DNA from: Oculina patagonica
Lineage: Eukaryota
Direction of reading: 5' to 3'
DNA length: 64,000 bases
NCBI RefSeq assembly: GCF_052425735.1
Contig: NC_135770.1
Location: 37,696,001-37,760,000, forward strand
Position numbers and translations under genes: made by a program. The notes beneath the pieces were generated by a model, which saw only the letters and a list, made by a program, of their open reading frames with translations, was not told where the DNA came from and ran no database searches. Below, piece after piece: positions 23,429 to 52,961 of this stretch. Numbering within the stretch: the stretch's first letter is position 1; the number at the start of each line of letters is the position of its first letter.

Positions 23429-24950
23429 CAATTTTATTCAGCCACTTAATATACAGCTACGTAAGTCAAACCATTACTACATGTTTATAACAAGTACAGA
23501 GGAATCCGATTTTTTGAACCTCCGAGGGAAACCTGGTGATGGAAACAAGATCTGAGTTTGGTTCGAGAAATATAGGGAACTCGAGAAATCGAAGGCAACA
23601 TTGCAATCGTTGACAGAGTGAAGCAAGTCCAAAGCAAATAACCTTTGGTTCGAGTTATAGGGAAGTTCAAGTGGTCGAGAAATCGGGATTCCGTTGCAGT
23701 CTTTAATTTTATGTTAAACAATGACAAGTGCATACTATTTTAAAGCAACTGCCTCACCAATGGCGCGCCCTGAAACGTTAATATAGCTACAGTCCTGTCT
23801 CATTAATCTAATTTTAATCTCCTACAATGCCAACTATCCTTGTTACGCTGTTTTGGTGTTTTACTGTCTACTGAGATATTTGAAGGTTTTCTTCGATTTC
23901 AAGTGTGTCCGTGTTATAATACAATGCCATGCCATCCTTTTAGCCTTAGTAACGAAGGAAAACTCGGGTCTGCCCTTCTTGAGAAGAGATTATACAAAAA
24001 ATATATTATTGTTGGCTAGCACTAGTTAAGGTCTGACATCCTAGTCTAAACAAACAGGTTTATTCTTATATATCAAAACTTTTCCCTGTGGACGTTTTAT
24101 TCAAATCACCCTGATGATGACTTAGTCTAAGTTGTAAATGTTTCACTTTGTTTTTTTTTCTTTTTAAAGGTTTTAAACAAAATATTTAGCCTTGTAAATA
24201 GTTATTTTTACTAGTAAAGGGCTTAAACACCATATTTATGTAAAAAATAACAGAGACCCTAAGATTCGTAGTACCGGTACGAGATTCGCCAATTTACTAT
24301 TAGTAAAGGAGTAGGTACCTGCATGCAAGCCAGTGTCATTTTGGCGGGAAAATGACAGCCGTTGTCTTAGTACTTAGCAAGAACAAAGCAACAATTGCAA
24401 TAATTAAAACCAATTCTCGAAAGGTAAGTAAGCTCATATTCTCAATTACGAAATGGCAAACTAAACGGTCCTCAGGAAACTCAACCAGTCATTTATGATT
24501 TTCATAAAAGGTAAAGTAAAGCTTTCTGGCCGGAATTCATCATTTTTTAGTATTTCGCAAAAAAACGTAGTCGTACTCCAATTCGGGATCTAAAAGTCTA
24601 TAACAATACGGAGTACGAAAATTAACCCGTAAATCTTATTTCAGAGAGGACGATTAAAAAATTAAGACACGAAACTTTTGCTCCGGCTTTCAAATTACAA
24701 CTAACTTTAAACAAATATCAATAGTCTTAAATTAGTTAAATGTGGATTTAATTACTAAAGCAAGCGATGAGCAAAAATTTCAAAGCTCTACTATATCCCA
24801 AAGTATGTTTCGATAATTGTGTAATGCTCTGAAGTTTTTCATCAGAGAGTTTTTACGCCACGAAACTTTGGAACGATCTACCTTTTTATATCAAACAGTC
24901 TAAAAGCACAGCGATTTTTAAAAAGAACCTTAAAACATTTCTTTTTTAGT
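23429..24950. repeat. Spacer block shared by the three type-B units (also ~33687-35770 and 43621-44299 plus 51504-52460)
   Basis: Colinear matches such as acatgtttataacaagtacagaggaatccgatt and caattcgggatctaaaagtctataacaatacgg. Confidence 0.9.
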
Positions 24951-25213: not shown

Positions 25214-25214
<1 letters not shown>

Positions 25215-25237: not shown

Positions 25238-26609
25238 TTATTTGCGCCACCAACTGCGCCAAAAACCGTGTCTCATGCATCTAGGATATGCACCATATCC
25301 CGAACAACGGAAGCCAAAAACAAATGGCGTGAGGCAATAGGAACTAAACCAACATTTGTCACAACACTTGTCATGCTCCCAACAACCCTGATGATGACAG
25401 CAATCGCCTCCACAGAGCAAAAGCCAGCACGTACACCCCTTACCACACATGCCAAAACAGTCGTCATTATTAGGATCACCCAACAAACTACAGCTTCTGG
25501 GGCGCGGCCAAAGGAAGCGCTTCTTTCTTTCACCATGCTGGTCAGCGGCTTCGTCATCTAAGTCATGCACGGCTCTCGAGCTCAGCTCGGTTGGAATCTG
25601 AATGTCCGACGTCTTGAAGACGCTGTAGCAAAGAGCATGAAATGGCTTCAGAATATCCAACTGGGTAGAGTTGTCGCTCAGCGCTGCAGACACGAGTTCC
25701 AGAAGGTGAATTTCTGGAACGTAGTGCAGCTCGCCAACGACTTCTTGATAATGAAATTTCAGCAGCTCAAGTTCTTGAGGTGATTCTTCAGCGGTTTGTT
25801 TGGTCGCCAGAAATTCACGAAGCACCTGTGGTACTCTGGGAATGTTGTCTGGAACATATATCAGCGATGGCCCGTGCCTGCAAAGGTTTGATATAAAAAC
25901 ACTTCAGTGAAACCTACTGAGCGGCGAGTATTGCATTTCAGGATCATCTATGGCATGACATCTACCGTTCATCGAACTGTCATTAGCATCGAACATTTGG
26001 ATATATAGTGCAGGCTGGTTTTTAATCCTTTTTTGGCCAGTTTTGCCGTTTAGAGAAAGGAAGAATTTTATACGTGTTAGTTAAAACAAATACAGAATTG
26101 TATTGTATTTACAAATTTTCAACACACAAAGTTAACTTTTTAACTTCTTTTCAAAATCTTAGCCTCTGGTTTATTTTTAAAATATTCTTAAAATTTCGCA
26201 AATTTCAGCCTCGATATCCTTATAAAATAAATTCTTATAGAAAAAAGAGTGTATTCAGTATATTCAGTGTTAGATGCAGAAGATTTGTTAAAGTTTTTTT
26301 CGATGCAACTTACCCTATGAATCCTTGATCTACAACCTGGTAGTAGAACATGTTTGGACCAAGTTCAAAGTAAGTGACAATTGCTTCACCTGTCGTCTTC
26401 AGTAATTTCATGGCGCCTTTGCGAACGTCAAAGCAAATGCCAAAGGTTTGATTGTAGTTGTAGCATCCCTTGACTCGCTGCTCTGAGTAACTCTGAAAGC
26501 GAAGTCCTTGCGGAACCGTATTTTCTGAATCCGAACTAAACACAACTGAGCATAAGGTCGCTGCGACCAGAAGCATGGGGATCATCATCGCACCAGTTGA
26601 ATGCATCAT
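25238..26609 (-). CDS. Secreted Cys-rich pre-pro-peptide, copy 2 (type B); exons 26609-26314 and 25877-25238; 311 aa
   Basis: Signal peptide; GG|GTAAGT ... ttgcAG|G in frame; RKKR site; 15-Cys peptide ending MRHGFWRSWWRK. Confidence 0.9.
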
Positions 26610-32699: not shown

Positions 32700-34048
32700 C
32701 TACCCAAACATTTAATTCCCAGTGCCCACACTGTGAAGAACAGTAATCATGATAATGAGATACACAGTTCATCAATCTCTAAATTAATATCACATGTTGC
32801 AATACAATAATAACTGATGAAATATATGTTGTTCATAGGCAAATTTTTTTACTTCACCAAAACCAAACTCAGTCATTAAATAATAAAACATTAAACACAG
32901 CTGTTTTGTTTTGTGGGTGTGTCTCACAGATCAGTTATTTGTTGTTAAGCCTTCTGTTTCAGTAGAACTAATTTTATAGCCATATTTTTTGCTCATGCTT
33001 GCATGGTTTAATATACAAGCAAATGCATGGTAAAATTTTTGCCAAACAATCTATACAGACTATACCTGAGTTTAGGACTAACAAACAGTATGTCTGCCTC
33101 TCCAGAATTTTTCTTAGTTTACATGCAATTAAGTAAAGTGAAGCCCCTCAAGGACAAAGGGACTCATATGAAGGGAAAATGGTGTTATCATTTTGGGGGA
33201 ACCTATTTGGCAGAATGATAAATGCCACTATTTTGCTTGCGGCTGGCTTTTACTCCGGTTTGCTAGCAGACAGCTGTTATTTATAGTATCGGGAAATAAT
33301 ACTGTCACTGTTCCAATAGGGCCCCCGTTTGAGGGGGGGGGGGGTTGGGACAAGCTACATGCAAAACTTTCCAGTTGTATGCTATGTACAGCTATAACAT
33401 ACCAGTTATGGTGGGTGTATGGATATTTTCTAGAGCAACGCTTTCTTTGTTCTAGTTTCTCTTTGAGAGTTTATATATCTTTGGGAGGTTATGCACAAAC
33501 TGCTAGATGATCATCCTCTTTTGATTGATCAACTATTTTTACTTTTATTTGGTGCTGTTGTTTATGGTGAAAAACAATACATATTATATATAAAGAAAAT
33601 AACACGAATAAAAAATCATTCTAAAAAAGATGTAAAGGGCATATAACCGGGGAGCTCCGCTTTTAGGCTTGCCTAAATCTATATATTACATGTTTATAAC
33701 AAGTACAGAGGAATCCGATTTTTCGAACCTCCCAGGGAAACCCGGAAATGGAAACAAGACTTAGTTCGAGAAATACAGGGAACACGAAAAAACAATGGCA
33801 ACATTGCAGTGTTTGAATGGTAAACAACTTTTGGTTCGAGTTATAGGGAAGTTCTGCGAGAGCTCGAGAAATCGGGATTCCGTTGCAGTCTTTAATTTTA
33901 TGTTAAACAAAGAAAAGTGCATAGTACTTTAAAGCAACTGCCTCACGAATAGCGCGCCCTGAAACAGCAATCTACAGTCCTGCCTTATTAATCCAATTTT
34001 AATCTTCTACAATGCCAACTATCCTTGTAACGTCGTTTTGGTGTTTAA

Positions 34049-34452
34049 GGTGGCTCGATCGGATTTTTGAGTGACGATACCTTTCAACTTTGAGCAACTT
34101 GTATGCCACCGTAAACAATCCGACTGAAAATCGATCAGTACAGCTGTACTAAAGAAAGATGAAAGTTTCGAATAAGATAAGTTTCGTCGAAATCGGAGTA
34201 ACCATAGCAACATAATAACGCCACCACCCAATTTACTCGAGACCGATTTTCTTGTAATAAAGGGATTATTTTGAGAAAGGGCTTCTAGATCTTGGACTTG
34301 ACATAGTTTTCTCAACGAAACTTATCCCTCGCGAAACTTTCATCTTTTTTTAGTACAGCTGTATTGATCGATTTTCAGTCGTATTGTTCACGCTGGCATA
34401 CAAGTTGCTCAAAGGTGAAAGGTATCGCACTCAAAAATCCGATCGAGCCACC
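34049..34452. mobile_element. TTAA-flanked MITE with ~130-bp TIRs (GG..CC termini, Kolobok-like)
   Basis: TTAA|GGTGGCTCGATCGGATTTTTGAGTG ... CACTCAAAAATCCGATCGAGCCACC|TTAA; absent from the paralogous sites at ~23860 and ~51588. Confidence 0.8.
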
Positions 34453-35185
34453 TTAACTGTCCTACTGAGATATTTGAAGGTTTTCTTCGATTTCAAGCGT
34501 GTCCATGTTATAATACAATGCCATGCCATCCTTTTAGCCTTAGTAACGAAGTAAAACTGGGGTCTGCCCTTCTTGAGAAGAGATTATACAAATAAGATAT
34601 TATTGTTGGCTAGCACTAGTAAAGGTCTGACATCCTAGTCTAAACAAACAGGTTTATTCTTATATATCAAAACTTTTCCCTGTGGACGTATTATTCAAAT
34701 CACCCTGATGATGACTTAGTCTAAGTTGTAAATGTTTCACTTTGTTTTTTTTTCTTTTTAAAGGTTTTAAACAAAATATTTAGCCTTGTAAATAGTTATT
34801 TTTACTAGTAAAGGGCTTAAACACCATATATATGTAATAACAGAGACCTTTAGATTCGTAGTACCAGTACGAGATTCGCCAACTTACTATTAGTAAAGGA
34901 TTAGGTACGTGCATGCAAACCAGTGTCATTTTGGCGGGAAAATGACAGCCGTTGTCATAGTACTTAGCAAAAACAAAGCAATAAGAAAAACCAATTCTCG
35001 AAAGGTAAGTAAGCTCATATTCTCAATTACGAAATGGCAGACTAAACTATCCTCAGGAAACTCAACCAGTCATTTAATATTCATAAAAGGTAAAGTAAAG
35101 CTTTCTGGCCGGAATTTTTTTTTTTTTTTAGTACTTCGCAAAAAAAAAAAACGTGCGATAAATCTCGTACTGACTTAGTCGTACT

Positions 35186-35413
35186 TAGACTGCAAAACAG
35201 TCGTTTTTTCTCTAAAGTTGTTGGAAAAAGCGCTTATGGAAAAAGTGCTTATCGAAGGCGCAAAGCGCCAAACGTTGAGGCACGAAGCGCCGATCGTCTT
35301 GCGAGCCTCGCACGCCCGCAGTCTCACCCATAGTTTTGACATTGGCTCCAGACCTCTCGCTTTCGTTTCAAGACCGAGCGCGTTCGCAAAAGATACGACT
35401 GTTTTGCAGTCTA
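35186..35413. mobile_element. MITE with TAG..CTA termini and a 9-bp TSD (Academ-like non-autonomous)
   Basis: agtcgtact|TAGACTGCAAAACAGTCG ... CGACTGTTTTGCAGTCTA|agtcgtact; empty site at ~52249. Confidence 0.8.
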
Positions 35414-35784
35414 AGTCGTACTACAATTCGGGATCTAAAAGTCTATAACAATACGGCGTACGAAAATTAACCTGTAAATCTTATTTCAGAGAGGACGATT
35501 AAAAAATTAAGACACGAAACTTTTGCTCCGGTTTTCAAATTACAACTTACTTTAAACAAATATCAGTAGTCTTAAATTAGTTAAATGTGGATTTAATTAC
35601 TAAAGCAAGCGATGAGCAAAAATTTCAAGGCTCTACTATATCCCAAAGTATGTTTCGCTAATTGTGTAACGCTCTGAAGTTTTTTTTCGTCAGAGAGTTT
35701 TTACGCCACGAAACTTTGGAACGATCTACCTTTTTATATCAAACGGTCTAAAAGCACAGCGATTTTTATAGTGACTATCATCTC

Positions 35785-38700
35785 TTATTTGCGCCACCAA
35801 CTGCGCCAAAAACCGTGTCTCATGCATCTAGGATATGCACCATATCCCGAACAACGGAAGCCAAAAACAAATGGCACGAGGCAATAGGAACTAAACCAAC
35901 ATTTGTCACAACACTTGTCGTGTTCCCAACAACCCTGATGATGACAGCAGTCGTCACAGACCCAAGACCAACACCAACACCCACTACCACACATGCCAAA
36001 ACAGTCGTCATTATTAGGATCACGCTCCAAACTACAGTGGCTTCTCTGGCGCGGCCAAAGCCAGCGCTTCTTTCTTTCACCATGCTGGTCAGCGGTTTCA
36101 TCATCTAAGTCATGCACAGCTCTCAGCTCGGTTGGAGTCTGAATGTCCGACGTCTTGAGAAGATTGAAGCAAAGAGCATGAAATGGCTTCAGAATATCCA
36201 ACTGGGTAGAGTTGTCGCTCAGCGCTACGGACACGAGTTCCAGAAGTTGAATTTCTGGAACGTAGTGCAGCTCACCAACGACTTCTTGATAATGGGATTT
36301 TAGCAATTCAATCTCTTGAGGTGATTCTTCAGCGGTTTGCTTCGTCGCCAGAAATTTACGAAGCACCTGTGGCACTCTGGAAATGTTGTCAGGAACATAT
36401 ATCAGCGATGGACCATGCCTAAGGATAACATTGTTAAAAACACTTCAGTGAAACCTTCTGAGCGGTGAGTATTGCATGTCAGGATCATCTATGACAAACA
36501 TTAACAGGCTTTGCCGGTTGAATAGAGCCACATTCCATTTAATTGTATGCAATGTAACTGCATATATCTTACTGAAGCATATATATGTGTTGTGGCTTTA
36601 CCACTGATTTCACCTTCGTGAAAGATTTCAAATTCTCGATTTGGGTAAATGACATTGGGGATGACAACTGAAATAAACGCTGCCGGTTTTGTGAGAATAA
36701 GAAAGTTTTTCCGGGAATCTAAAGAAAACGTCAATGGTCAGGGATCAGCAGTTCGAAAACCTCTCTGCAAAACCTCAATAAAAAGACATCAAGATCAGTA
36801 TAGCAAAGAAATAGGGAACATAAAAGTTAAAACATTGGCAACCGATCGTTCAGACATTTTGGGACGACCCTCCCCCGTAAAGCCGGGTTTACACGAGCAA
36901 TTTTTATGTGACAGCTTTTATTTGCTTGTGTAGATGAAAAAAAAATGGCCAATTTTTATGTGACGAATATATTTGTTGACAAGCTGGCGAGTTAGCTTTT
37001 GTGTGACAAATAAAAGTTGTCACATACGAAAATTGCTCGTGAAGACGACTCGTCACATAAAATGTAGCAAATATTGGTCCCCAATGTAATCCCCAATCTC
37101 CCAAACTCCCGCTGGGCACTGTGCACATGTTTCTCTGTGTGTATCTCTACTGTCTAAGGTCATTACTGGCGCACTAAACTTTGGATTGCTGACAAATAAT
37201 TGTTGTGTCACTCTCATCTACACGATCAAATAATTGTGTCACACAAAAATTGCCCGTGTAAACCCGGCTTAAATGACCTTGAAAAGCTATCTTTGATGAA
37301 AATTATAACCAAGCTACTGCGCGCGTTGTGACCTATTAGAGTACAGACGTACAGATGCGCGTGATCAAATCAGTGTTGTCGACAAAGCGAGAAACAATGC
37401 GCCAAGTCAAGACCTAACATGACTGCTACCAGAAACCCATTATGGGTTTCTGCTGCTACTCAACATTACAATAACACGCGAAAACTAATGAGTATAGCGG
37501 ATGTATATGGACTTCAGCAACTTATAACTAAACCCACGAGGATAACTCCGACCTCTTCAACTTTAATTGATGTGATCTACACCAATTTTCCTGATAAGAT
37601 TGTATGCACGGGAGTCTGTCATATCAGTATTAGCGACCATAGCCTAGTTTTTGCCTATAGAAAATTATCCATTAATGGAATATCTAGTAGACACAATACT
37701 ATAACTTATAGAAACTTTCGAAAATTCAATCGAAATCCCTGATTTTTCAAATGATGTTGCGTCACAAAATTGGGATCAGGTATATAACTCAATTAATCCG
37801 AATGAAATGTGGTCACAATGCAAGCACGCTCCATTGAGAACAATGCGTGTTCGCTCACGCAGTTTCCCATGGATCACCTCCGAACTAAAGAAACAAATGC
37901 GTCGTCGCGATTTCCTAAAAATTAAAGCAATGAAAACCAGTGATGCCAATGATTGGACGCAATTAAAAAAAACAACGCAATGCAGTAAATACTGAAATTA
38001 GATTAGCCATGCAAGCAAGTCTATTATCAAAATAGTTTTAACGAGTATGTTAGCGATCCTAATTAAGAAGACCTGGCAGACTATTAACGAATTAACTTCA
38101 CGAAAATCTGGGAAAACATCAGTTGCATCTCTGAAAGTGAACCGGGTGTCTGTTACTGACCCAACTGAGATATCGAACGAATTTAACAATTATTTTGCCA
38201 CCATCGGTCCAACTTGCCAGTAACTTTGATCCCTTAGAAAATGACAACTATCAGAAGTATCTCACCAGCACAGATAAACGGTTCCAGCTCCGTCCGACCA
38301 ATACGAATAAGGTCCTCTCACTTTTGAATAAACTAAACAAGTCAAAGGCAACTGGCCTTGACAAGATACCTGCTAGGCTCATCCGAGACTGCGCGGATCT
38401 CATCTGCATGCCTATTCGCGATATCTTTAACCAATCAATAAGTCTAGGTATATTTCCCGACGATTGGAAATGCGCGAGGGTTACCCCACTCTTTAAACAA
38501 GGCGATCGAAACGACCTTAACAACTATCGTCCAATTTCTGTGATCTCCATTGTGGCCAAGGTGTTTGAAAGAATTATTTATGACCAACTATATGCTTATT
38601 TAGAAGAACACGATATCATTTTTAAACACCAATCTGGTTTTCGTGCCATTCACTCAACTGTAACAGCTCTCCTCGAGGCCACAAACACTTGGGCATATAA

Positions 38701-40780
38701 TATCGATCATGGCAAAATCAATGCTGTTGTTTTCCTAGACCTAAAAAAGGCCTTCGACACAGTTGATGATGAGATCCTTTTGTCTATTAAATGAGGTCAT
38801 TACGGTATATATGGTAATTCACACCAATGGTTTAGATCATACATGTATTTAAAAAACCGCACACAAATGTGCTCCATCAATGGTTCGCTCTCCAATAGTT
38901 GTTCATTATGTTGTGGTGTCCCCCAGGGAACGATTTTAGGGCCGGCCACTACTATTTCTATTATATATAAACGATTTTCCGAATTGTCTCTCAAATTGTG
39001 AGCCAAGGATGTACGCAGATGACACCCACCTTACATACGCGAGTGACAACACAGACAATATTCAATTACGCCTAAACCAAGACCTAGAAAACGTTCACAA
39101 CTGGCTGAGAGCAAACAAACTTACTCTAAATGTGACTAAAAACGAGTTTATACTTATTGGATCTAGGCAGAGGCTTAGTAATCTTACAGGTTCCCCGAAA
39201 GTTGCATCAATGATTTTCAAGTTAGCCAGGTCACATCTGCAAAATCACTTGGAGTGATCATCGACGACAGACTTGATTGGAGTAGTCACATCGAGAAAAT
39301 AACTAAGAAAATTGCTTCTGGGATTGGGGCCTTAAAACGAGTAAGGCACCTGGTTCCTCAAGCAACCTTACACCTAATATATAGAGCTTTAATACAACCG
39401 CATTTCGACTACACTGCAATACTGTTTGGGGAAACTGTGGGATTACTTTGCAAAACAAGCTACAAAAGCTACAAAATAGAGCAGCCCATGTTTTGGCCTT
39501 CTCAAACTATGACGCGCACGCTGGTGATTTATTTGACATTCTAGGATGGAAAAATCTAGCTTGCCAGCAGCAAATTCAAAGAGGCACGATGGTTTACAGG
39601 TCTCTGCACGGGTTGGCTCCAGACTATCTATCCTCTAAATTTGAAAACGTGAAACCGAGTACAACCTAAGGGACTCTGAAAACAAACTCAATTCCACCCG
39701 GGGGGGGGGGGGGTGTTCCATTACCAACTATTATAAAAACAGCTTTTCCTATAGTGGCGCCATCTTGTGGAACAGCCTTCCTCAGTATTAACGTAATACA
39801 AGCAGAGTCCCTTGGGCAATTTAAAAATCTAATTGAATGAGTTCTCTAGGGCACGGCATTCGTGGAAAGCAGCTTTTTTATATATTTTTATATTTCCCTT
39901 CTCTCTCTATATATATATATCTCTTCAAATCTTTATATTGCTCTAGTTTATCTATTGAGCACTTTAATAGCTGATGAAGTCTTCAATTCATTGTAAATTG
40001 TATTAACTGATGATTTGACCGTGTTTTTAAATAAAGATTATCCAAGTATCCCGGGCAAGTATCTTTCACCTTTCGAAACATTTAACTGGGCTAAACAAGC
40101 TTGAAGTAGACAGTAGATGATTCGAGAAATTAGCGAAATCTGTAAGAGTTTGTCCGATGTTGAATAGTTGGACGACGCTACGGGAAACAAATGAATGGCG
40201 GTTGAACGCTTAGGTTAAAGCTTACAGATTTGAACAACTTTCCAAATGTAATAAAGGTTAGCTTTTTAGTTGACGTTTTAATTTTCCATTGTTCTGTTTA
40301 TTAAATCGGTTTGACAGTGTTTCGTAGTTACAAAAAACTTTATCGTGAAATGAAAACAACTTTAGCTCACCGGTAGCGGCATTTTGTGTTAGTACCACAT
40401 TTTGACGTATCTGTGATGTATAACTGAACAAACCGGCACGGCAAAATGGAATCTCTTTGTTAATTAACTAGTTGCCTTAGAACTTACCCTATGAATCCTT
40501 GATCTACAACCTGGTAGTAGAAAATGTTTGGACCAAGTTTCATGTAGGTAACAATTGCTTTTCCTGTCGTCTTCAGTAATTTCATGGCGCCTCTGCGAAC
40601 GTCAAAGCAAATGCCCAAGGTTTGATTGTAGTTGTAGCATCCCTTGACTCGCTGCTCTGAGTAATTCTGAAAGCGAAGTTCTTGTGGGACTGTATTTTCT
40701 GAATCCGAACTTGACACAACTGAGCATAAAGTCGCTGCGACCAGAAGCATGGGGATCATCATTGTACCAGTTGAATGCAT
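35785..40780 (-). CDS. Secreted Cys-rich pre-pro-peptide, copy 3 (type B); exons 40780-40488 and 36418-35785; 308 aa; 4.07-kb intron
   Basis: Signal peptide; GG|GTAAGT ... ccttAG|G in frame; RKKR site; 15-Cys peptide; intron expanded by a LINE and a MITE. Confidence 0.88.
36881..37269. mobile_element. PIF/Harbinger-type MITE in the copy 3 intron
   Basis: TAA|AGCCGGGTTTACACG ... CGTGTAAACCCGGCT|TAA; empty site cccctgtaaatgacctt in the copy 4 intron (~53970). Confidence 0.8.
37400..40040 (+). mobile_element. Degenerate 5'-truncated LINE (CR1/L2 group ORF2: end of APE plus RT), antisense to the host gene
   Basis: PTRIT...TLIDVIY, ISDH, NNYRPISVIS..AKVFE, QSGFR..HST, VFLDLKKAFDTV, GVPQG, YADDT; several frameshifts and stops; ends approximate. 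Confidence 0.9.
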
Positions 40781-41942: not shown

Positions 41943-43620
41943 AAGCCTGATTACTCCATTGGCTTATTAAGTCAGCTTAAGAGTTCCTTTTCAGCCTTCA
42001 ATGAGCCTTGATGATAATTCGCTCGTTTGTTTACTTCCCGGCTCAGGCTTCAGTTCAGCGCTTCCTCAGTTGCTAAATTAATTAATATGGACAAACATTT
42101 CCTCCGTGTATGACACGTTTTCATTAATATCAGCAATATTGTTTTGTTTACATAGTAACATCATAAATTTGATATAGTGTACCTAGAAGGAAGCAGCTTA
42201 ATCAAATCGTACGTTTAGTTACTTGTTAAATTAAATTGAAATCGTATGGTTACTTGGAAATTACAGCTTAGACGCCTTCTCCGTGTTGTTGTAGTGTTGT
42301 GGTACACTAACATGGCCTTAACATGGCAACAGCAAAACTAAGGAACTGAGAAGAGATATTTCTATTAATATTTTACTTCCAATCGGTATTCTTCAGATAT
42401 CACGAGCTCCAACTTATTCACGAACATTCTAACTTCGTTTGCGAATACTATTCTTACCTTCAGCCCGCGGCGACAAGTCCAAATATAAAAGCCCGCTAAT
42501 TATAAATCATTCTATAGCCAATCAGAGTACGAGGATTCTCAATAACAAAATACCAATTCAGCAGTCAGTTGTAATGTCAATACAAGAAGCTTCACGAAGA
42601 CAGGGTCATCAGCTTCCCGACACCAGCTTCTCGTAAAATTGATGAATGAAATGTATGGCTTCCGTACGTTCAAGAAGAAAATAATTCTTCTCGTTTTTCG
42701 CTTGTAAAGTTAGTTTGGTAAATGTTTTACGTCTCAGTGACGTCCCCTCATATATTCGCATAGAATAAGCGAGAAACTTCTGAATCAAGAGAAACTGGCA
42801 GAAATCCACGTCGTAATCAGTCATATTCACTGTGTGTGTAGAAAGACTGGAGAGACTCAGACTGTTGTGTCAAGTACATAAGATAGGATCATGTAACGCA
42901 ACGCAGTGAATCAACAACTTTTAATACTTCCCACAGACCTCGAAAATTAATGAGATTTGGACTTTTGAAAAAGTTTTAAAAAGAGCCATGTTAACAATAA
43001 TCATCTGGCATTTGGCCCTAACATATTCACTGTTATTTGTCCACGGACGTTATTTTTGTCTAAATAAAAAAGAGAACTTTATGTTTTGGACAGACTGGTT
43101 ACGTATTCTGCGTATTCATTTTGACGCGTCACAGGATCACCCAAACGGAGAAGCCTCGAGTAAAAACTGACATGTCAGAGTGATCATAAAAACATTGACA
43201 TCCATTAAGCCTCTAAACAGAATACACGGATATTTGTCTTGCACATCGTGATCTGTTCCTCGAAGTTCACAGTTTTCCTCGAGCTTCGCTAAAAGCAAGT
43301 CGCCTCTAGGAACAAATAACAGCCCCGGGTAGATATATTTTCGCGCCAAATTGAGATTATTTTAATATTTCCCCCAGTACGTTTTGGCTGCAATAATTAT
43401 TCAGACCGTGCACCGATATAAATCGTCAGTGGGTAAAATGTTTGATGCATTATAAGTCACGATATAAAGTGATTTTTTACAAATTGTGCAAAATTCCCTC
43501 AAATTTTACGGAAACCTTAGAAAGGAGTTGGATCAAGGTTTAAAAGAATCGGGAAGATTGAGAAACCAAGCAATAAGCTTGCAAGAGAAACATGAGAAAA
43601 TACAAGCCATTTAAAATAAT
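41943..43620. repeat. Duplicate of the copy 1 upstream region, without the coding exon
   Basis: Matches 9505-11250; similarity ends ~35 nt short of the copy 1 ATG. Confidence 0.9.
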
Positions 43621-43852
43621 CAATTTTATTCAGCCACTTAATATACAGCTTCGTGAGTCAAACCATTACTACATGTTTATAACAAGTACAGAGGAATCCG
43701 ATTTTTCGAACCTCCGAGGGAAACCTGGTGATGGAAACAAGACTCGGTTGGAGAAATAGAACACGAGAAAACAATGGCAACATTGCTGTGTTTGACTAAG
43801 TGAGGCACGGTACAAGATAAACAACTTTTGGTTCGAGTTATTGGAAAGTTCT

Positions 43853-44168
43853 CAAACAGCGGTCAAACGCAGAGCGCGTGCGCAGTTACTGTGCAATTCC
43901 CGCCAAAATTCTCCACACGAAGTCTTAAATGTTCCGAAAACTTTCGCTTTATAGCCAAAAGTTAACGCCATCTCTGGAAAATTAAGGTTTATACGCAGCT
44001 AATGGATGGGAAATTTAATTCATCTCCACTGAGTTTCCCAGCTTGAAATTTTCTTTCACCGTACTATTTCTTTAACAATTTCTTACAAAAGTTTGTCCAC
44101 TTTCGAGTTGAAAAGTTCGAGGCGGTGAAAACCGGACGTGACGTCAATTTTTGCCTTTGACCGCTGTG
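43853..44168. mobile_element. MITE with ACAGCGGTCAAA inverted termini
   Basis: ACAGCGGTCAAA / TTTGACCGCTGTG; absent from the paralogous sites at ~23660 and ~33850; TSD unclear. Confidence 0.6.
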
Positions 44169-45760
44169 AAGGAAGTTCAAGAGATCGAGAGCTCGAGAAA
44201 TCGGGATTCCGTTGTAGTCTTTAATTTTATGTTAAACAATGACAAGTGCATACGGGCAACTGCCTCACGAATGGCGCGCCCTGAAACAGTAATCTAGCTG
44301 GCACGGCGGAAAAACCGCTGATTGGCTGAAATAAACGTCGTCAAAGAGCATGCTCAACCGTTTTCCGCTGACCGTGTGCGGGTGCAATTGAGTTCGAAAT
44401 ACTGTTGAAGTTCAGCCGCGAGGTTTCGACAGTGAGCGTTTTTGCAAGTTTTTACCCTGCTAGAACTTCTGCTTGCCATAGAGAATGTGGATAAAGTAAA
44501 GGTAAGAATGCTAGAAATTTTAGTTTGGTTTTATTTATTTCTTTGAGCCTCATTTGTTGTGCTATTATTTCCTTCGTCAGTTGGATGTTGCGTTCATTCA
44601 GCTACGCGAACCACGTGCTTTGCCTGACTAACTACACGATTTAATTTTCTGCTACAGGAATTGATGAATAGATGACTTGAAACGTTAGAGTTAAGCGGTA
44701 AGCATAGTTAATCTTTCATCGCTATAAGCTTTGAGCTGGATGATGTATGTTTGTAGGCAGTATTTTTATCTTCCAGTTATCTTTAGCTTCGTAAGGTTAT
44801 GTAAGCTTATGCGCCATTTCTTTACCCATCGCTGGTGTGCTTATATTTTTCTTTGCAGTTTTAGACTTTGGAGAATGTAGATTTTGTCCGAAATTTTCTT
44901 ATTCAATCATTTGAACTCCCTTATACGTCTTAACTCTCTTCTGGGAAGGAAACGGTTTGGTTTCAGTCCACCATGTTAAATTAACAAGCTTAATAAAGCT
45001 TACAACAAGCTTCGGAGTGAATATTTGTCGAGAAACAAATGTTTAAAGTGAGCCTTTTCTTTCTCCGTTCAAAGATTGTCTGGTCTCTCGTCCAAATGCA
45101 AATGGGGTTTAAAAATTGCACGGAATAGAAAAAGAACTTTATTTACGTGTGTTATTGTGTACAACATTTATGTACATTGTATTTGCTGTTTTTATTTTTC
45201 TTGGAGTTTTAAGAATCCAGGGCAAATTATGTTCTATTGTTTTGTACTATAAATAAAAATACACCTGGATTAATTCTTGTAAATAGACCTAAAGATATTG
45301 ACATTCAATGTCTGTCAATCAGTCGTTTCTCAAGATCAATCACTGTACATGGCTGTCACAGAGTTAAAATTACATTGACCCACTTATAAATAATGTCAAG
45401 ATAAGATATTTACAAGTTTATCTAAAATACAACTGCAGATAATTTGTTTCTAGTACTTTGACTAGACCCATTCTATTTGAACTTCAACTTGATAAATATT
45501 TTTACAGCTATGCTTAATGAAAACTGTAACATGATTTGCAGTCTTCTGGCAATACAGTAGTAAGAATGTATGTACACTGTATAGCTCCTAAGAAATGGAA
45601 ATGACTGTTAAACAGTGATTTGTTTATTACACTTATTAAGATCAAGTTGTTGTGGTGTTAGTTTAAGTGTTAAAATCCTATTATATGACAAGAAAAGCAA
45701 ATGGGATTGTAAGACCAGTTTTTCATTGTTGCTCTTTCCATTTACACAGGAAAACGCCAA

Positions 45761-48760
45761 CTATCTATGGGTGACTTGATGTTGGGTCAGCCCCCCTTTG
45801 GTCTTGCACACTCGGCCACATGTGATACACACATGACCAGTGTCAACATTTGCTGGTGCTGCTTCTGTATGGCTGGAGATTGTAGGTTTTGATTTCCTGT
45901 TACTGAACTTGAATAACTGTGCCAGTGGTATGTGCTGGAGTGTTTCCTTGGCTTTAAGAAGTATCTTCTGATCTGTCGTGACATTCTTGCCTTCACTGTC
46001 ATCATCATCTGAGTCACTGTCATCATCATTGTCATCTCTGTCATTGCCATCAGCACTTGGTTCTTCTCCATCGTCATCATCACCCACTAATCCTTTATTG
46101 AAGCTGCTAGCAAGTTCCTGAACTCTTTGAGGAAGCTTTGCAGTACAAATTGGACAGCAAGCCTTGTTTGGCATTGAATACCCATGATCACTGAAATGTG
46201 GGGATTTGCCAAGACAAGCTTTATGAAACGTGTGGCCACAGTTGAGTCGTTGAACTGGTAGATCGACACTGTCATCATCTGCTCTGCAGTCTGCTGCATC
46301 ACAGGCTATCAAAGGATCTGGCTCCAGTCCACTCCATGCATAGCCTAAAGGCAAGCTTCTCTGATCAACAGTGGCATCAAGAGAGGGAAGGTAATATGGC
46401 TAGAGAGAAGAGGAGCAGTGTTAATTGCATATCATTTTTGCTTAGTTAGGTACCTTTGCATGCCTAGAAAATCATATATATTATTCTGGCATCTTCCAGA
46501 GTTAGAAACTGAAATCAGAAATATAACAGAATGATGTGAAGTTTTGTGTACAAGGTGCTACGTTTTTAGGCTGTTTGGGATTTTGAGGGATCATGGAGAT
46601 TACTGTTCATATGTTTTTGCTATTTTGGTTGACTTTTGAGTCTAAAAAAATGTACACAGATGCTAGATAGGATCAAGAAAAGACTGAAAGCAGACCTTGT
46701 TATTAGGATACAATGTACATGAAGGTAAAAGTCTGTGTGGTTTATTATAAACCTTTTATTTTTACCTGGTACTTACGGCGTCCTTTTGGTATTTTTGCAG
46801 TGCTACCCAAGTTTTGCCTCACTGAGACAAACAAGTCAAGGAGAAACTCAGCGGCTCGATTTGACAACAATTGAAGGTTTCGAACACCTCTTCCCCTGTG
46901 ATTTGCAAGAAGGAACCAGGTACAGAAATCCTCTTCAAATCTGTTCATATTAAGGGCCTTTGCAGCTTCTTGAATTTGGGCAGCGGTTGCATTGGGAGGA
47001 ATCGATCTGATGAAAGAAAATAATGAAAGCATTTGCTTGAGTTTAAGTATTGCATATGGGGTACAAACATGTATACATGTATATATGAATTTTTACTTCA
47101 TTGTGTATTAGACCATTGTGATGCAAGCATCCAACTACAAGTGAAGTACTAGTAAATTGAATGTGAATGCCACAAGAGCTCGTTTTGTAGGGTCTTTGTT
47201 TAATTATTTTTTTTAAGAGAGTAATAAATATTGAATTTTTTTAACATGTCTTGAAACTGTAAAACAGAGAATGGTATTGTTGGCAATCTGACGTACACAT
47301 GTAACAGTATTCACTAAAATACATTAATATTTATTATAGTAGGATTATTTTTAACGCAACTCTGTTAAATCAGTTGCTTTGAAAGGATGAGTTCAATATC
47401 TATCAGCTTTTGAAGTTGAACTGATTTTATTTTGTTTTATTTTTTTTTTTTCTGTAGATGTTACATGTACCTCTGAAGAAGTGAATGAAACACTTCCACT
47501 TTTTTCTCTGTCAGCTCATTAAGGGAGTGTTCTAGGAGTTGTTGTAAACTAGCAATGGCCAAACTCTTATGATGGATAAGGTCACTCAGTTGACACAGTG
47601 TGGCTTTGTCGTAATGGCGCCTTCGTTGGACAATGAACATTAGTGACAACCGCACCATGGCATGGAGCCAGTTTGCTTGGTCTCCCCCTCTGAAAATGAC
47701 GCTGTAGAAGTAAAACACCAGTGGAACCAGTTCGTCGAGAAGAAATATCAGCATCACATACTCTGGGTCTTTGCACTGTCCGAAAGCTGTCAGAACAGTA
47801 GTTTTTATCATCAGCCATCCACCAAATGCAGCAGAAATAAGTGTTGAAATGCGGTACGGTTTCGGCTTGTTTGGCAGCACCTTTCTTTGGCCGAACAAGT
47901 ACTTGTGCAGTTTTTCAAAGAAACAGCGGAAGTTTGTGACAACATCTTCTTGCGCATTCAGGTAGATGTGAAAGGGCCCTTGCCATGGTACAATGGACAG
48001 TAGGAAGTCAGGATCAACACTGGGCCTCAACTGTTGGGTAAGGAAACAATACTCCTGTCAAACTTTAAGAATTGGAAAAGATGACATGATCGATGAATAT
48101 AAAGTTTTAAAGCATACATGTACCTGGCAGATAATTTTCTTGTTGTAGTACCAAGTTGGCCAGTCACCAGACAAAAACAACAGGTTGTTTTCCATGTACT
48201 CCTGTAGTGAAGGGCACTCTTCAGTGATGTGATTTATGGCACTCCTGTAGTTACCCATACTCTTGAGGTTCTGTTCAAACTCATCAACCAGCCAAGTGTT
48301 GGACAGCAAATCCAGTTCATGTCTGGCCTCATCGGTATACACTCTAAAAGGCAGAATTAATGTAGTAGTATTATATAATGTTCCTTAAAATTGCATAGCC
48401 CCTTGGGTGAATTAAACTTGACTCGTATGAAAAGGAAACAAAAACTACAGCTTGGAATTTGGACTTGAACTTGATTGTTATAGAAATCAAGATATGATAT
48501 TGAATTTCTGTATTCCTTTAAGCTTCAAAAGGAAACACAGTGAGGGAATTATAGTAGGTTGGTGGACTAAATAAAATGCAGGGCTTGAGACTAACTTTTT
48601 AACTCACTGGTTTACTGGCTAGTGACATGTCAGATTTTTCTAGCCAGAAGTAATTTTTCACTAGTCAGGTATATTGATTTCTTTAAAGAACAGTTGACTT
48701 TTCCGAGTTTTTCACTAGCCAAATGGCTAGTAGGAATGCTAAACCTGGTAGCTAAACCTT

Positions 48761-48793
<33 letters not shown>

Positions 48794-51077
48794 AAATGCA
48801 AAGTCTTGAGTATTTCTAACCTTAGCTCTACAATGCTTTTGTTTACACATGCCATGTTGAAATTACAATACTCTTCCGGCAGGGCATCCAGGTAGCTGAA
48901 CATGAAAAAATCTGGCAGATATTGACTGAAGAGCTGGTTTACGTTATCTGCATTGATCCCACCCCTGCAATTAACAAGTCCTCTCCCAGGCACATGAACA
49001 AGTACATTTTGATATATTATTGGATTTCCCTTGATGGCAGGAAGAGACTGCTGGCTATCAACAACTGCCGTACACATATGCAAACTGGTACTGAGATCTG
49101 TCTGTTTCGGGTCCTTAATTGTGTGGATACAATGGAAATCATCAATAATTAGCAGTAGAAACTTGTTGTCCTGTTGAAAAAAGAAACAAGTGATTCAAGA
49201 AATGATTAGCTGTACTTAACATTGCTGTATTGTACGTGTACATTTTGGTCTCAAAAAAAGACAACGTACATTCCAATCTTGATATTTTATGTTAATTGTC
49301 AATTTACATATATTTTTGTGGATACAAAATAATGTAAACATTGTTTCAATTTTATACCTTATTACAGTACATGAGCATCAGATTCAATTTGGTGATACAA
49401 AGATAATTTTCTTGAACTAAATCCATTCTTGCCCATATACATGTAATAAGATCTGGTACATTTTCCATGTAATTACTGACAGTTATGTATTTCACTTTTT
49501 ACCTTTATGGCAGTTTTAATGATTGTATTAGTGCTGCTACTGCTTTTCATTGCCCTAGTCTTCTTGTGGTTAAACACACTTCTGGGGTGTGTACTAAACC
49601 CTAGTAGACTCCCAGCTGTCAAGGCATCATCACTGGCACCATGAAAGGATAGGTGGACACCACAGTCTTGTTGCAATGTGTTATTTTTCTGTACAAGTTA
49701 AATTGTAAAATAAGAAATTAGGCATAATAAGCTGGCCTTACTTCATCTTACTTCCTGATATTTCTGAGGGGAGTGGGCCATAGTACAGCCACACACACTG
49801 TACCTAATTATAACAGCTTTTGTACCAAAAGTGCATTATCAGCTTACTTGATTTCGAAAATATGAGAACTGATGCAACATTGCAACAACTCGTTGCCTTT
49901 GGGTGTCTTCTCTCCTTTTTGAAATTTTTTCTTTTCCATCATTTCTGATGACTTGTAGAAGGTCATCAAACAAACCAGGTGCATGCTTCTCACAAAACAT
50001 TTTCATAGCATCAGGGTTGTAGAGCTTTGCTCCTCCAGTATCGTAATGTCTTGTTAGTTGCTTATGGAACAAAAAGAATTTCTCATGGAAAGGTGTCTCT
50101 GAAAAATAAGTTAAACTAGTTTAATAATGACATAATGTTTTCCTCTTCTGGGAAAATTATTTTAGAGTTAATAGATAATTACTTTGGCTCACAGCATTAT
50201 TGGGAACCTGGTATACTGTATATGTAATATGCCCAATATTGCTGTGAGCCAAAGTAATATCTACTGTATTATTATTATTATTGGCCCTCCTTAAAACCTT
50301 ATTTTTCTCTCTCTGCACTACATTGACAATTTCAGTCCCTTCCACACTGATGTTTTGGTTCATGGCTGCAATCGTTGATATATCGCAGAGAGAGAATAAT
50401 AGGATTTCAGGAGGGTCAGTAATTTTTTTAACTGTAGTGCATTATATTAAAAAAGCCAAATACCGTGACTTTGTTGTTTGCAGCAATGTGCTCTTAATTC
50501 TTCATTTTCTTTCTGTAAACTGGCAATTATTTGTTTTGCTTCAGCTAACTGATCCCATGAATCTGTAGTCTGGGAGGTCCCATCCTGGAATTGTACCATG
50601 TTCAAGGGCATGTCAGAATTCTTCTAAAATAAACAAATGGGAGAAGAGTCACATCTGAGTTTGGTTATGTAAAAGAGTACAATGTTAAAATGAAAACAGA
50701 ACAAGTTTGGTGTGTACCTTTCTCTTCTTGGGTGGTTTGTAGAGTGCATGTTTGGTAACCTCAGGGTCCTGGTCCATAAATTCAAGGTGTTGCTTGCACA
50801 GAAACGTCCCACCATTGTACCGAGGCATCTCGGTCAAAACATCGATAAGCCTCTTCGGACATGGCGAATAATACGAGTTGTTACTACAAGATTTATCCTG
50901 ATAGCAGCAACTTGATTGATTTTGGGTTGCAAAGCGTTTTGCATGGTTTCGACAAAGCCAAACTGATCTCGTGAGGCCACAAATAAATGCCTCCTGGCCT
51001 GTTATTTTACTTACAGTACCGGAGCATTGATCGAAGTCGCTTCGTAAGCGAGAGCTGTACTCGCACAAATTTTCCAT
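45761..51077 (-). CDS. Putative DDE transposase (Academ/DUF6589-like) with C-terminal RING-H2 and C2H2 fingers; 9 exons: 51077-50718, 50623-50464, 50098-49848, 49688-49503, 49170-48821, 48343-48124, 48054-47471, 47006-46766, 46399-45761; 996 aa
   Basis: All eight introns are GT-AG and phase-consistent (2991 nt, no stop found); motifs LLIIDDFH, SGDWPT, PWQGPFHIYLN, TEKKVEVFHS; CGHTFHKAC..CPIC; CITCGRVCKTKGGLTQHQVTH. Confidence 0.8.
48579..48793. mobile_element. hAT-like MITE with a 5-bp TSD, in a transposase intron
   Basis: aaatg|CAGGGCTTGAGACTAAC ... GTTAGTCTCGAGCCCTG|aaatg. Confidence 0.75.
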
Positions 51078-52961
51078 TTCAAATTACTCATCCCATTATA
51101 GCAATTGTAAATTGTCGACAGTCAATATTTTGATCCCCTACATCTAACGTTTGTTTACGTAAATTTATAGCCTTAAGTAACCATGAACGACCTTAAGTTT
51201 TGATATTTTGTGTTGCGTGCTGACCGTCGAGAACTAGCAGTTTAGTCAAGTACGGTCCCCAGTTCCGAGGAAGGATAGAGGCCCTTATTGCCAGGCAATA
51301 GTTATAAAAATTACTATACCCCTTTTTAAGGAGTTTTAATTTTAGAATATGGAATTTCTTTAACATTTTTTGCGCTATATGCGGAGTTATAGAAGCGCAA
51401 ATTTCGTAAATTTTCCGGCTTTTATGAGCCGCTCAGCACGGGTCAGCGGATAACAATAATACCCGCGAAAAGGACAGCCAATCAGCGGTTTTTCCGCCGT
51501 GTCAATCTAGCTACAGTCCTGTCTTATTACATGTAATCCAATTTTAAACTCCTACAATGTCAACTATCCTTGTAACGTTTTGGTGTTTTACTGTCCTACT
51601 GAGATATTTGAAGGATTTCTTCGATTTCAAGCATGTCTATGTCATAAAACAATGCCTTGCCATCTTTTTAGTCTTATTTACGAAATAAAAGTGAACTATT
51701 CGCTACTTGAAAAAAGATAATACAAAAAATAATAATAACTTTATTTAAGTGTCGAAAATGTTTAGCTGAGAGGAAAAATCCCCTCTTCTAATTGTGGACA
51801 CCGATCTAAAACTTAACTAAAATCTAAAAAACGATATTATTGTTGGCTAGTACTACCACCTAACGTCTAGTAAAGGACTTGAACGCCATCTATATGTAAT
51901 AATAACAGAAACCTTTAGTACCGGTACGAGATTCGCCATTTACTATCAGTAAAAGAGTGGGTGCGTGCTAACCAGTGTCATTTTTGGCGGGAAAAGGAAA
52001 ACTGTAATACTGTACTGCGACAGTCTAGCAGAATTGTCTTTAATAGTACTTAGCGAAAAAACAACAATTGCAATAAGAATAAAAAACCATTCTCAAAAGG
52101 TAAGTAAGCTCATATTTTCAAAAACGAAATAACAATCTAAAATCCTCGGGTAACTCAACCAGTCATGATTTTCATAAACAGCAAAAAAAAATCTTTCTGG
52201 CCGGGATTCATTTCTTTAAAAAACGTGCGATAAATCTCGTACTGACTCAGTCGTACTCCAATTCGGGATCTAAAAGTCTATAACAATACGGCGTATAACT
52301 GATTTCAAAGAGGACGATCAAAACATTACGACTCGAAACTTTTGCTCCGGTTTTTAAATTTTAACTTTAAACTAACTTCAAACAATTGCAGTAGTCTAAA
52401 ATAATGTGGATTAATTAGCGATTAGGAATATTTAAAGGGCTCTAGCTAATATCCAAAGGTATATTTTACCTCAGCGATTTCTTAAAATACATTTTAAGAT
52501 ACAACACAACAATATCACGTTAGAGATCAACATAGAAGTTAACCTAATGACATTCATTTCAATTTTAAGATCTTGAGAAAGTGCCAAAGTAAATTGTTTG
52601 ATCTACGAAATTCTTAAACCATCATTAAACAAACAGTCTGACTCTATCCGCGTAAAGTTATTCTTATAGTGTATTTTTATAGTTTACTTTTAAACTTTTA
52701 GAAATTTTATATTTAAGTGCATTTTTAACCTCTAGTTTTATAATTTTCAGTTATTGTGCTAATTAGGTCTTTTGTATTTTGTAGTTTTTTACTTACATGT
52801 TGTAACGCTTTAAGGTTAAATTTACATATTTTTATCACTCTTGGCATTCCCATGAGTTAGTTTTACTTATCAGTATGTTAATTGCAATCGCTCTAGCTTT
52901 TTTAAACTTGAAAATGACCTCGGAGAGGTCGAAACGTCGTTTTTTATCGCTATGTTTGTAT

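Follow-up and report, generated by a model that had tools for sequence, protein, structure and literature searches.

Academ transposases carry GD..T and G.FH motifs, and the transposases of one animal AcademH sublineage reportedly include a PHD-type finger. In RAG1, a RING E3 domain occurs in the same protein as a DDE core. AcademH elements (Kojima 2020) are defined by a helicase and have TSDs of 9-10 bp, whereas AcademX elements have TSDs of 3-4 bp, according to PMC10045372. Rehavkus elements, as described in PMC6446971 (Table 1), have one ORF and a PHD finger, are bounded by TIRs of 26-400 bp, generate TSDs of 9 bp, and are reported from arthropods and annelids only. Cnidarian VTD genes have been found fused to transposon-associated domains; transposon-borne VTDs occur mainly in Helitrons/Helentrons, and not in DDE transposases (Erven et al. 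2022, PMC9741609).

We analysed a window of 64,000 nt from Oculina patagonica (GCF_052425735.1, NC_135770.1, positions 37,696,001 to 37,760,000, forward strand). A 7.2-kb element at positions 44300-51503 is very likely an autonomous-looking cut-and-paste transposon (class II, TIR) that encodes a DDE transposase of about 988 aa with a RING-H2 finger; its superfamily may be Academ or a Rehavkus/MULE-like one. The first-pass annotation had proposed a transposon insertion, and this was borne out by the TIRs, by a TSD of 9 bp, and by paralogous sites that are empty (Table 1). The two TIRs differ by one mismatch, at position 2, over 29 nt. Their 27-nt core was found at two sites in the window, which are the two ends of the element, while 0 were expected by chance, and the TIR terminus is conserved in copies from other coral assemblies (L001 and L003). 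The TSD is perfect on both flanks. Its length, for which 7 and 9 bp had both been considered, is 9 bp, and the same length was found in 6/6 independent insertions representing three element lineages. The left flank of the element (85.6% identity) and its right flank (81.8%) meet at the first empty site. Instead of the single empty site noted before, two were found, both of them diverged paralogues inside the same window; the host segment is duplicated in tandem, and the element has probably inserted into one of the units. Internal to the TIRs, a subterminal motif had two matches in the window (0 expected), 61-74 nt from the left end and 50-63 nt from the right end. L001 contains a related motif, and the pair is a candidate second binding site of the transposase.

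Table 1 Features of the element and its paralogous target sites; positions refer to the 64,000-nt window
Feature	Position	Strand	Remarks
Left TIR	44300..44328	+	29 nt; 3' terminus with respect to the gene
Right TIR	51475..51503	-	29 nt
Left TSD copy	44291..44299	.	AATCTAGCT, 9 bp
Right TSD copy	51504..51512	.	AATCTAGCT, directly after the right TIR
Empty paralogous target site	23780..23788	.	AATATAGCT, single copy
Second empty paralogous site	33969..33973	.	Same target with a 4-bp deletion
Subterminal motif GGTCAGCGGAAAAC	44360..44373	-	Inverted relative to its partner at 51441-51454
Subterminal motif GGTCAGCGGATAAC	51441..51454	+	Partner of 44360-44373
Non-coding region 3' of the stop codon	44329..45760	-	About 1.4 kb, no ORF of at least 60 aa
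Exon E1	51077-50718	-	N-terminal Cys/His module and PPKKRK basic patch
Exon E2	50623-50464	-	Coiled-coil-like helix
Exon E3	50098-49848	-	Helical region, LYNPD...HAPGL motif
Exon E4	49688-49503	-	Splice sites and open frame
Exon E5	49170-48821	-	First catalytic D, in LLIIDDFHCIHT
Exon E6	48343-48124	-	Second catalytic D, in LSGDWPTW
Exon E7	48030-47471	-	GPFHxxLN, KPKPYR, all-helical insertion domain, catalytic E in KKVEVFHS
Exon E8	47006-46766	-	Helical region after the catalytic core; GTAAAA donor, CAG acceptor
Exon E9	46399-45764, stop 45761-45763	-	LPLGY motif, RING-H2, acidic tract, C-terminal C2H2 finger

The transposase gene is located on the minus strand and consists of nine exons with GT-AG borders, compatible phases, and no stop codon inside any exon. 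The frame was verified by phase arithmetic and by translating each exon separately; the eight junctions are predicted. The nine exons keep one open frame, and the copy appears to be intact, as the first-pass annotation had stated. The 996 aa given there are obtained when E7 begins at the alternative in-frame acceptor 48054. However, acceptor 48030 fits the intronless homologues better, which results in 2964 nt of coding sequence and 988 aa. E7 and E8 are contiguous in the intronless homologues, and the E8/E9 junction agrees with the annotated Desmophyllum protein P0066.

All motifs of the core that had been claimed before (IIDDFH, GDWPT, PWQGPFH, and VEVFHS) were located in the window copy, as was the acidic tract. 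In the family alignment, each D of the first motif is conserved in 41/42 sequences, the second catalytic D in 68/71, and the catalytic E in 69/71; an H, likewise encoded by E7, is conserved in 69/70. The window copy has all of the catalytic residues. An AF2 model of the sponge homologue P0074 (pLDDT 84.8, pTM 0.77), which is collinear with the window protein from the zinc module through the RING, shows an RNase-H-like core with an all-helical insertion (547-680). In this model, IDDFH lies in beta-1, GD at the end of beta-4, and GPFH directly after beta-5, while the catalytic E is in a helix. When the model was compared with the PDB using Foldseek, the best 50 matches were all Hermes, RAG1, P-element or Transib transposases (highest probability 0.99, highest TM to target 0.50), none of them below an E value of 0.001 (best 5e-3). 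The proposed DDE/RNase-H assignment is thus supported by modelling, performed on the sponge homologue rather than on the window protein itself.

As modelled, the protein would share with hAT (Hermes), the P element, and Transib/RAG1 the RNase-H-like DDE core, the all-helical insertion that separates the second D from the E, and an H-containing motif directly after beta-5. However, this motif is GPFH here and C/DxxH there, and the TSD has 9 bp compared with 8 (hAT), 8 (P), and 5 (Transib). A PDB sequence search did not find a transposase, so that the likeness does not extend to the sequence level. No Pfam model covers the transposase core, and hAT dimerisation, THAP, and GTP-binding domains were not detected.

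Several modules accompany the core. E1 contains the family-invariant residues C18, C42-x2-H45, C57, and C94-x2-H97, and the position equivalent to E2 forms a long helix (138-179) in the P0074 model. A RING-H2 finger had also been predicted, and when the family profile was compared with the PDB, the only hits were RING-H2 E3 ligases (E 1.8e-6). Its eight ligands (C33-x4-C38-x15-C54-x-H56-x2-H59-x2-C62-x19-C82-x2-C85 in exon 9 numbering) are near-invariant in the family, from 32/32 to 46/47, and complete in the window copy. The spacing of the first pair is C-x4-C instead of the canonical C-x2-C. By itself, exon 9 of the window gave only sub-threshold Pfam RING matches. The RING-H2 finger would confer E3-ligase activity. 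One C2H2 finger is present at the C-terminus, as expected. The RING had been regarded as a fusion specific for a distinct lineage, but this view had to be abandoned: an architecture with a zinc module and a coiled coil in front of the DDE core and a RING behind it is common to hosts ranging from sponges to amphioxus and to fungi, and the C2H2 tail is the sole coral-specific part of the architecture.

The transposase family is large, unnamed, and spread across animals and fungi. At E<=1e-3, it comprises 1176 cluster representatives, and at the stricter limit of E<=1e-10 there are 690; clusters have up to 266 members, and the hosts include sponge, Lingula (brachiopod), Ptychodera (hemichordate), Branchiostoma (amphioxus), corals, Glomeromycota, and rotosphaerid protists. 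The family is mobile. At an unrelated locus, the L003 copy is bounded by the same 29-nt TIR, retains all nine exons, and is flanked by its own 9-bp TSD (TGCGTAGTC), and the intronless relative P0247 is present in four copies that are 99.8-99.9% identical, reside at different loci, and consist of a single ORF within 5.7 kb, with perfect TIRs of 30 bp and, in 4/4 cases, a TSD of 9 bp. The transposase is under purifying selection, with dN/dS values of 0.16 against L002 and 0.18 against L007. The annotation 'recently active' is only weakly borne out for the window copy itself: a near-identical second copy was not found, and the closest among the other copies that were found has 93-98% identity and contains a stop codon.

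It is possible, with a chance somewhat below even, that the element belongs to the AcademH side of the Academ superfamily, either as a helicase-less non-autonomous derivative or as an undescribed helicase-free lineage with a 9-bp TSD. If so, the family may need a helicase in trans. The cross-brace class of the finger would match the PHD-type finger reported for one animal AcademH sublineage. At the level of described features, the element shares with AcademH its TIR-bounded class II structure, a large DDE transposase, a TSD length that equals that of AcademH and differs from that of AcademX (PMC10045372), and an occurrence in animals and fungi, including Mucoromycota-related Glomeromycota, that parallels AcademH (PMC10799480). 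The domain DUF6589, whose link to Academ is putative, gave a weak match (E 1.6e-3) over the second-D/GPFH region; however, this was sub-cut-off and restricted to one of the 22 full-length relatives that were scanned together with nine window exon fragments (31 queries), and 0/18 further relatives, scanned separately, had a match. The defining helicase is also missing. In agreement with the first-pass annotation, Pfam searches revealed neither a helicase nor an XPG domain in any window exon or among 40 relatives, and none was found in neighbouring genes at 16 loci. The region 3' of the stop codon is short and its reading frames are closed, leaving no room for an encoded helicase. In addition, the four near-identical single-ORF copies of P0247 indicate that a helicase seems unnecessary for mobility.

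An assignment to Rehavkus, that is, to the MULE superfamily in a broad sense, whose transposase has a PHD/RING-type finger and is encoded by a single ORF in an element with a TSD of 9 bp, is improbable. The element is compatible with all four traits given in PMC6446971, including the short-to-moderate TIRs, and Foldseek did not separate RING from PHD for the exon 9 finger, both fold matches being non-significant. However, the ligand order is C3H2C3 (RING-H2) and not C4HC3 (PHD). In Rehavkus, the 3' TIR is preceded by a minisatellite or by tandem repeats in subterminal position, whereas TRF found no such array in the element, including positions 44329-45760. None of the named relatives is from an arthropod or annelid, and Pfam MULE/Transposase_mut models matched neither 40 family proteins nor the window exons (E<=0.1 for the exons and one scan of relatives, E<=0.01 for the other scans). 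A domesticated host gene between chance inverted repeats is highly improbable, even though the protein is under purifying selection and several genomes have homologues with an annotation as ordinary hypothetical proteins, in view of the TIR core, the perfect duplication of a target present in single copy at two paralogous loci, the L003 copy in another genome, the large clusters, and the many degenerate family copies with stops and nested retroelements.

For the cut-and-paste transposon, the following mechanism can be envisaged. The N-terminal Cys/His zinc module is probably the DNA-binding part, recognising the TCAGCGG-containing terminal and subterminal repeats, and the coiled coil probably serves multimerisation. 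The enzyme would excise the element at the TIRs and integrate it by making cuts with a 9-bp stagger. The RING-H2 finger may recruit an E2 that would ubiquitinate either the transposase itself or, where transposition takes place, chromatin/repair factors. This proposal parallels the RING of RAG1, although the finger here is an H2-type RING at the C-terminus and that of RAG1 is N-terminal and C3HC4. It is also consistent with the additional deubiquitinase domain of some relatives. The window copy lacks a VTD domain, but in six relatives (P0078, P0084, P0099, P0102, P0108, and P0247) the C-terminus is formed by a Cys...Asp-x-His domain with a match to the solved structure of the VTD DUB 8adb (E 1.4e-5), and these relatives differ from other transposon-borne VTD DUBs by the context of a DDE transposase.

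The 27-nt core of the terminal inverted repeats (TIRs) was found at two sites in the 64-kb window, and these are the two ends of the element; no site was expected by chance. Diverged paralogues of the flanks, with 81-87% identity, lie in other parts of the window, and two empty paralogous sites were identified (see the table). At site 1 the flanks abut and the 9-mer is present only once, and site 2 has the same junction with a 4-bp deletion. The element represents a true insertion that created a 9-bp target-site duplication (TSD) and that took place after the segmental duplication. The flanks in the window and the empty sites thereby also settled the length of the TSD, for which the first-pass annotation had left a choice between 7 and 9 bp, at 9 bp. 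A subterminal motif, GGTCAGCGGAWAAC, also given as GGTCAGCGG, is located near each end in inverted orientation and shares the sequence TCAGCGG with the TIR. It is likely to be a second binding site. The region is AT-rich, with a GC content of 0.35-0.43, and the window contains no N.

Coordinates of the element, its ends and target sites, a related element and the surrounding host segments (positions in the window unless a locus is named)
Feature	Position	Size or sequence	Remarks
Window element	44300-51503		Bounded by TIRs
TIR pair of the window element	44300-44328 and 51475-51503	29 nt	Single-position difference
TSD of the window element	44291-44299 and 51504-51512	9-mer AATCTAGCT	Directly outside both TIRs
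Empty paralogous site 1	23780-23788	9-mer once, as AATATAGCT	Left and right flanks abut
Empty paralogous site 2	33969-33973		Same junction minus 4 bp (deletion)
C2H2 finger	Last 24 residues of the window protein	C-x2-C-x12-H-x4-H	Beta-beta-alpha fold
P0247 element (assembly ERZ25073789)	L012:8965-14664; same span in L013, L014 and L015	5.7 kb	
Host segments	8220-11250, 23426-25830, 28052-28618, 33684-36371, 42300-44299, 51504-53500, 58671-59133		

The gene model was examined exon by exon, using separate translations and the agreement of the phases. On the minus strand, nine stop-free exons with GT-AG borders and agreeing phases form a single frame that opens with the ATG at 51077 and closes with the stop codon at 45761-45763, and together they comprise 2964 nt, or 988 aa. 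The open frame of nine exons was thus recovered as first described, whereas the length of 996 aa that had been given for it is obtained only with an alternative in-frame acceptor at 48054. For exon 7, the acceptor at 48030 agrees better with intronless homologues than that at 48054. Support for the junctions 6/7, 7/8 and 8/9 comes from intronless relatives and from P0066, an annotated protein of Desmophyllum pertusum. Together, the TIRs, the TSD, the empty sites and the nine-exon frame bear out the initial description of an intact, intron-rich transposon. The non-coding tail of 1.4 kb contains no ORF of at least 60 aa.

A 94-aa open frame in intron 2 (50160-50441) was considered as a further exon and rejected, as no homologue aligns with it and it sits in a palindromic insertion; the two palindromic stretches of this intron are at 50172-50263 and 50277-50423. 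Intron 5 carries a MITE-like insertion of 215 bp (48579-48793) with 17-nt inverted ends that are 94% complementary and with AAATG flanks on both sides. No further copy of it is present in the window, and it is missing from the sister copy of the element at locus L002.

At the sequence level, the catalytic part of the protein was not recognized by existing models. Pfam searches exon by exon yielded no match in the catalytic exons and, for exon 9, nothing besides RING and C2H2 matches below the cut-off. In 40 relatives, the catalytic core was not covered by any Pfam model, and a sequence search of the PDB with the profile of the core region gave 0 matches. The fold was analyzed using an AlphaFold2 model of the sponge homologue P0074, which stands in for the window protein and was built from an alignment of 85 rows (pLDDT 84.8, pTM 0.77). 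In this model, the IDDFH motif lies in strand beta-1, the Asp of GD(W/Y)P at the end of beta-4 and GPFH after beta-5, followed by an all-helical insertion (547-680), and the Glu of VExFHS is placed in a helix. The modelled layout is that of RNase-H-like DDE transposases with an insertion domain. Foldseek was run against the PDB, and its 50 best matches were all transposases (Hermes, RAG1, P element or Transib), with an E-value of 5e-3 and a probability of 0.99 for the first of them and TM-scores of up to 0.50 for the P element. As no match fell below an E-value of 0.001, these results support the fold and do not prove homology with any single transposase.

The residues in question are highly conserved. 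In the family alignment, each Asp of IDDFH was found in 41/42 sequences and the Asp of GDWP in 68/71; in GPFHxxLN, the Gly was present in 72/72, the His in 69/72 and the Asn in 71/72; in VExFHS, the Glu was present in 69/71 and the next His in 69/70. The D, D and E residues are thus 96-98% conserved, and all conserved core residues are present in the window copy. The model, the Foldseek matches and the conserved triad agree with the proposal of a DDE transposase with an RNase-H-like fold, and the window element is predicted to work like a DDE transposon of the hAT/P/RAG type.

Next to the core, the protein contains several zinc modules. The RING ligands in exon 9 follow the pattern C-x4-C-x15-C-x-H-x2-H-x2-C-x19-C-x2-C, which is the C3H2C3 order with cross-brace spacing; the first ligand pair is spaced by x4 rather than the usual x2. 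For each of the eight ligands, conservation between phyla is 90% or more, and the window copy has the complete set. When the family profile was compared with the PDB, only RING-H2 E3 ligases were retrieved (ARK2C, RNF165, Arkadia and RNF38, E 1.8e-6 to 1e-4). Exon 9 alone gave a PDB match with an E-value of 0.14 and a Pfam RING match below the cut-off, and its model (pLDDT 73.6) gave non-significant Foldseek matches in which RING and PHD fingers were mixed. The ligands and the family-profile matches support the RING-H2 finger of the first-pass annotation. The classical C2H2 finger at the C-terminus is confirmed; it is matched by PRDM9 fingers at an E-value of 1.8e-4 and was aligned by Foldseek with SALL4 and PRDM9 fingers (rmsd 0.4-0.6 A, probability about 0.9). 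This finger is restricted to the coral copies of the family. Near the N-terminus, an invariant Cys/His pattern (C18, C42-x2-H45, C57, C94-x2-H/C97) lies next to a basic PPxKR patch, and we infer that this module would bind DNA.

The family is very large. Searches with exon 7 retrieved 69 relatives, whose named sources were only corals (Desmophyllum, Oculina). A profile of exons 6-8, compared with 1.84 billion representatives, retrieved 1176 proteins at E<=1e-3, of which 690 reached E<=1e-10. Relatives with a full length of about 900-1300 aa were found in the sponge Oscarella, the brachiopod Lingula, the hemichordate Ptychodera and the amphioxus Branchiostoma, in the glomeromycete fungi Diversispora, Gigaspora and Rhizophagus, and in the rotosphaerid protists Pompholyxophrys and Lithocolla; they are annotated as uncharacterised or 'hypothetical protein' throughout. 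A transposase family of over 1000 cluster representatives, whose hosts range from sponges to amphioxus and also include arbuscular-mycorrhizal fungi, has no Pfam model. A word search with the core profile showed no precomputed Pfam domain among the matches listed (best 120 of 164), and a bridge to DUF6589 was sought among the same best 120 of 164 and was not found. The corresponding search with the full-length alignment returned 5 matches, in which low-complexity words dominated. The sponge protein P0074 is collinear with exons 1, 3-7 and 9 of the window gene, which shows that the whole architecture is ancient and no recent fusion. The RING finger is family-wide and the collinearity extends from exon 1 to exon 9, so that its reading as a new, lineage-specific fusion had to be abandoned.

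Six relatives (P0078, P0084, P0099, P0102, P0108 and P0247) carry an additional C-terminal domain of about 200 aa in which a Cys is invariant and an SHxH motif of the Asp-x-His type is present (Cys...Asp-x-His). This domain gave matches to 8adb, a VTD deubiquitinase of solved structure (E 1.4e-5), and to Pfam Herpes_teg_N (E 5.6e-5). In cnidarians, VTD genes with fused transposon-associated domains have been noted (PMC9741609). The VTD match indicates that some members of the DDE family combine a RING finger and a deubiquitinase in one transposase. The constant RING-H2 finger and the optional deubiquitinase suggest that the family may interact with ubiquitin signalling. As the DDE core is always paired with RING-H2, and in some members with VTD as well, it becomes a testable question whether some transposases manipulate ubiquitin signalling where they transpose, a role that has been proposed for the RING of RAG1.

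Further copies of the element were analyzed at other loci. A second full copy (L003, with its haplotig L004) is present in another coral assembly; it has the same 29-nt TIR, which is perfect there, its own 9-bp duplication TGCGTAGTC, and all nine exons with about 75% nucleotide identity to the window copy, while the introns can no longer be aligned. Retroelement ORFs, for a gag-protease of the Ty3/gypsy type and for an RT-integrase, are located by or within this copy (L003:841-5807). On a scaffold of the Tara coral metagenome (L001), the terminus and the subterminal motif are kept. In three copies (L007, L008 and L009), decay is evident from stops, frameshifts and nested retroelements; in L008, an RT ORF lies between exons 2 and 3 (5314-7332). 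The sister copy L002 shares 93-98% identity with the window copy and contains one stop codon. The dN/dS of the window copy was 0.16 against L002 and 0.18 against L007; the transposase evolved under purifying selection.

The distant intronless relative P0247 (1120 aa) is present in four copies at four loci of one genome, which are 99.8-99.9% identical. These copies have perfect 30-bp TIRs starting with AACATAGGTGC, and all four are flanked by 9-bp TSDs (TGCGCAAGT, ACTTCTCAT, CCTACGACC and GTATAAAAG). The P0247 element looks currently or very recently active, and its four mobile-looking, single-ORF copies show that one ORF is apparently enough for mobility. TIRs and a TSD of fixed length, as expected of a cut-and-paste DDE transposon, were thus present in the window, in L003 and in 4/4 P0247 copies, and the TSD was 9 bp in 6/6 insertions. 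The perfect TSD, the near-perfect TIRs and the intact frame also make recent activity of the window copy plausible.

The assignment to a superfamily did not yield a uniform picture. Academ seems the most likely home of the window element, a tentative placement that we rate at slightly under an even chance. AcademH elements have TSDs of 9-10 bp and AcademX elements of 3-4 bp, a difference that has been tied to the helicase of the former and the XPG nuclease of the latter (PMC10045372). The 9 bp of all six insertions match the AcademH length. However, AcademH encodes a helicase beside the transposase, and no helicase was found in the window exons, in the 40 relatives scanned or among the neighbouring genes at 16 loci; a neighbouring helicase was also sought at the fungal loci L005 and L006 and at the coral loci and was not found. 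AcademX, in turn, has an XPG nuclease fused to the transposase and the shorter TSD, whereas XPG_N and XPG_I had no match in the window exons or the 40 relatives, and no XPG was present among the neighbouring genes at 16 loci. The absence of both domains that was noted initially thus extends to relatives and neighbours. DUF6589, the putative link to Academ, appeared below the threshold in 1/22 full-length relatives in a scan of 31 queries (these 22 and nine window exon fragments), with Pfam containing no model named Academ. If the family belongs to Academ, it breaks the published rule that ties 9-10-bp duplications to the helicase.

Rehavkus, a MULE-related group, is an equally formal rival, because a 9-bp TSD, one ORF and a PHD finger have been reported for it (PMC6446971, Table 1), and the window element shares the 9-bp TSD and the single ORF. 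However, the ligand order of its finger is RING-H2 and not PHD, and Pfam MULE and Transposase_mut had no match in the window exons or the 40 family proteins scanned, at E<=0.1 in part of the scans, including the window exons, and at E<=0.01 in the rest. Subterminal tandem repeats, or a minisatellite that precedes the 3' TIR, are also characteristic of Rehavkus, and the window element has neither: TRF over 44000-51800 detected no tandem array besides the coding acidic tract, and the repeats near the ends consist of the single subterminal motif pair. A third reading, which we consider unlikely as a whole, is that the family is a separate, unnamed opisthokont cut-and-paste lineage of superfamily rank, neither Academ nor MULE, with built-in ubiquitin machinery, in which all members would share the 9-bp TSD, the single ORF and the RING-H2 module, several lineages would have a VTD-type deubiquitinase, and transposition would be coupled to ubiquitin marks that are written or erased on the transposase or on chromatin or repair factors. 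The first-pass interpretation holds in part. Its transposon, DDE fold, RING-H2 and C2H2 fingers and lack of helicase and XPG are supported, and Academ membership and E3 activity of the window transposase are kept as putative labels only.

With its defined ends, 9-bp duplication and intact gene, the window element is a complete candidate for an active cnidarian DNA transposon. It can be assayed directly for transposition and might become a genetic tool in corals.

The window is made up of diverged host segments arranged in tandem, with 71-89% identity, and only one unit contains the transposon. Repeated ORFs on the minus strand (52965-53660 and 58622-59290) matched no Pfam family above the cut-off. 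A reverse transcriptase fragment (RVT_1, E 1.2e-12) on the plus strand at 38198-38794 is probably part of a decayed retroelement.
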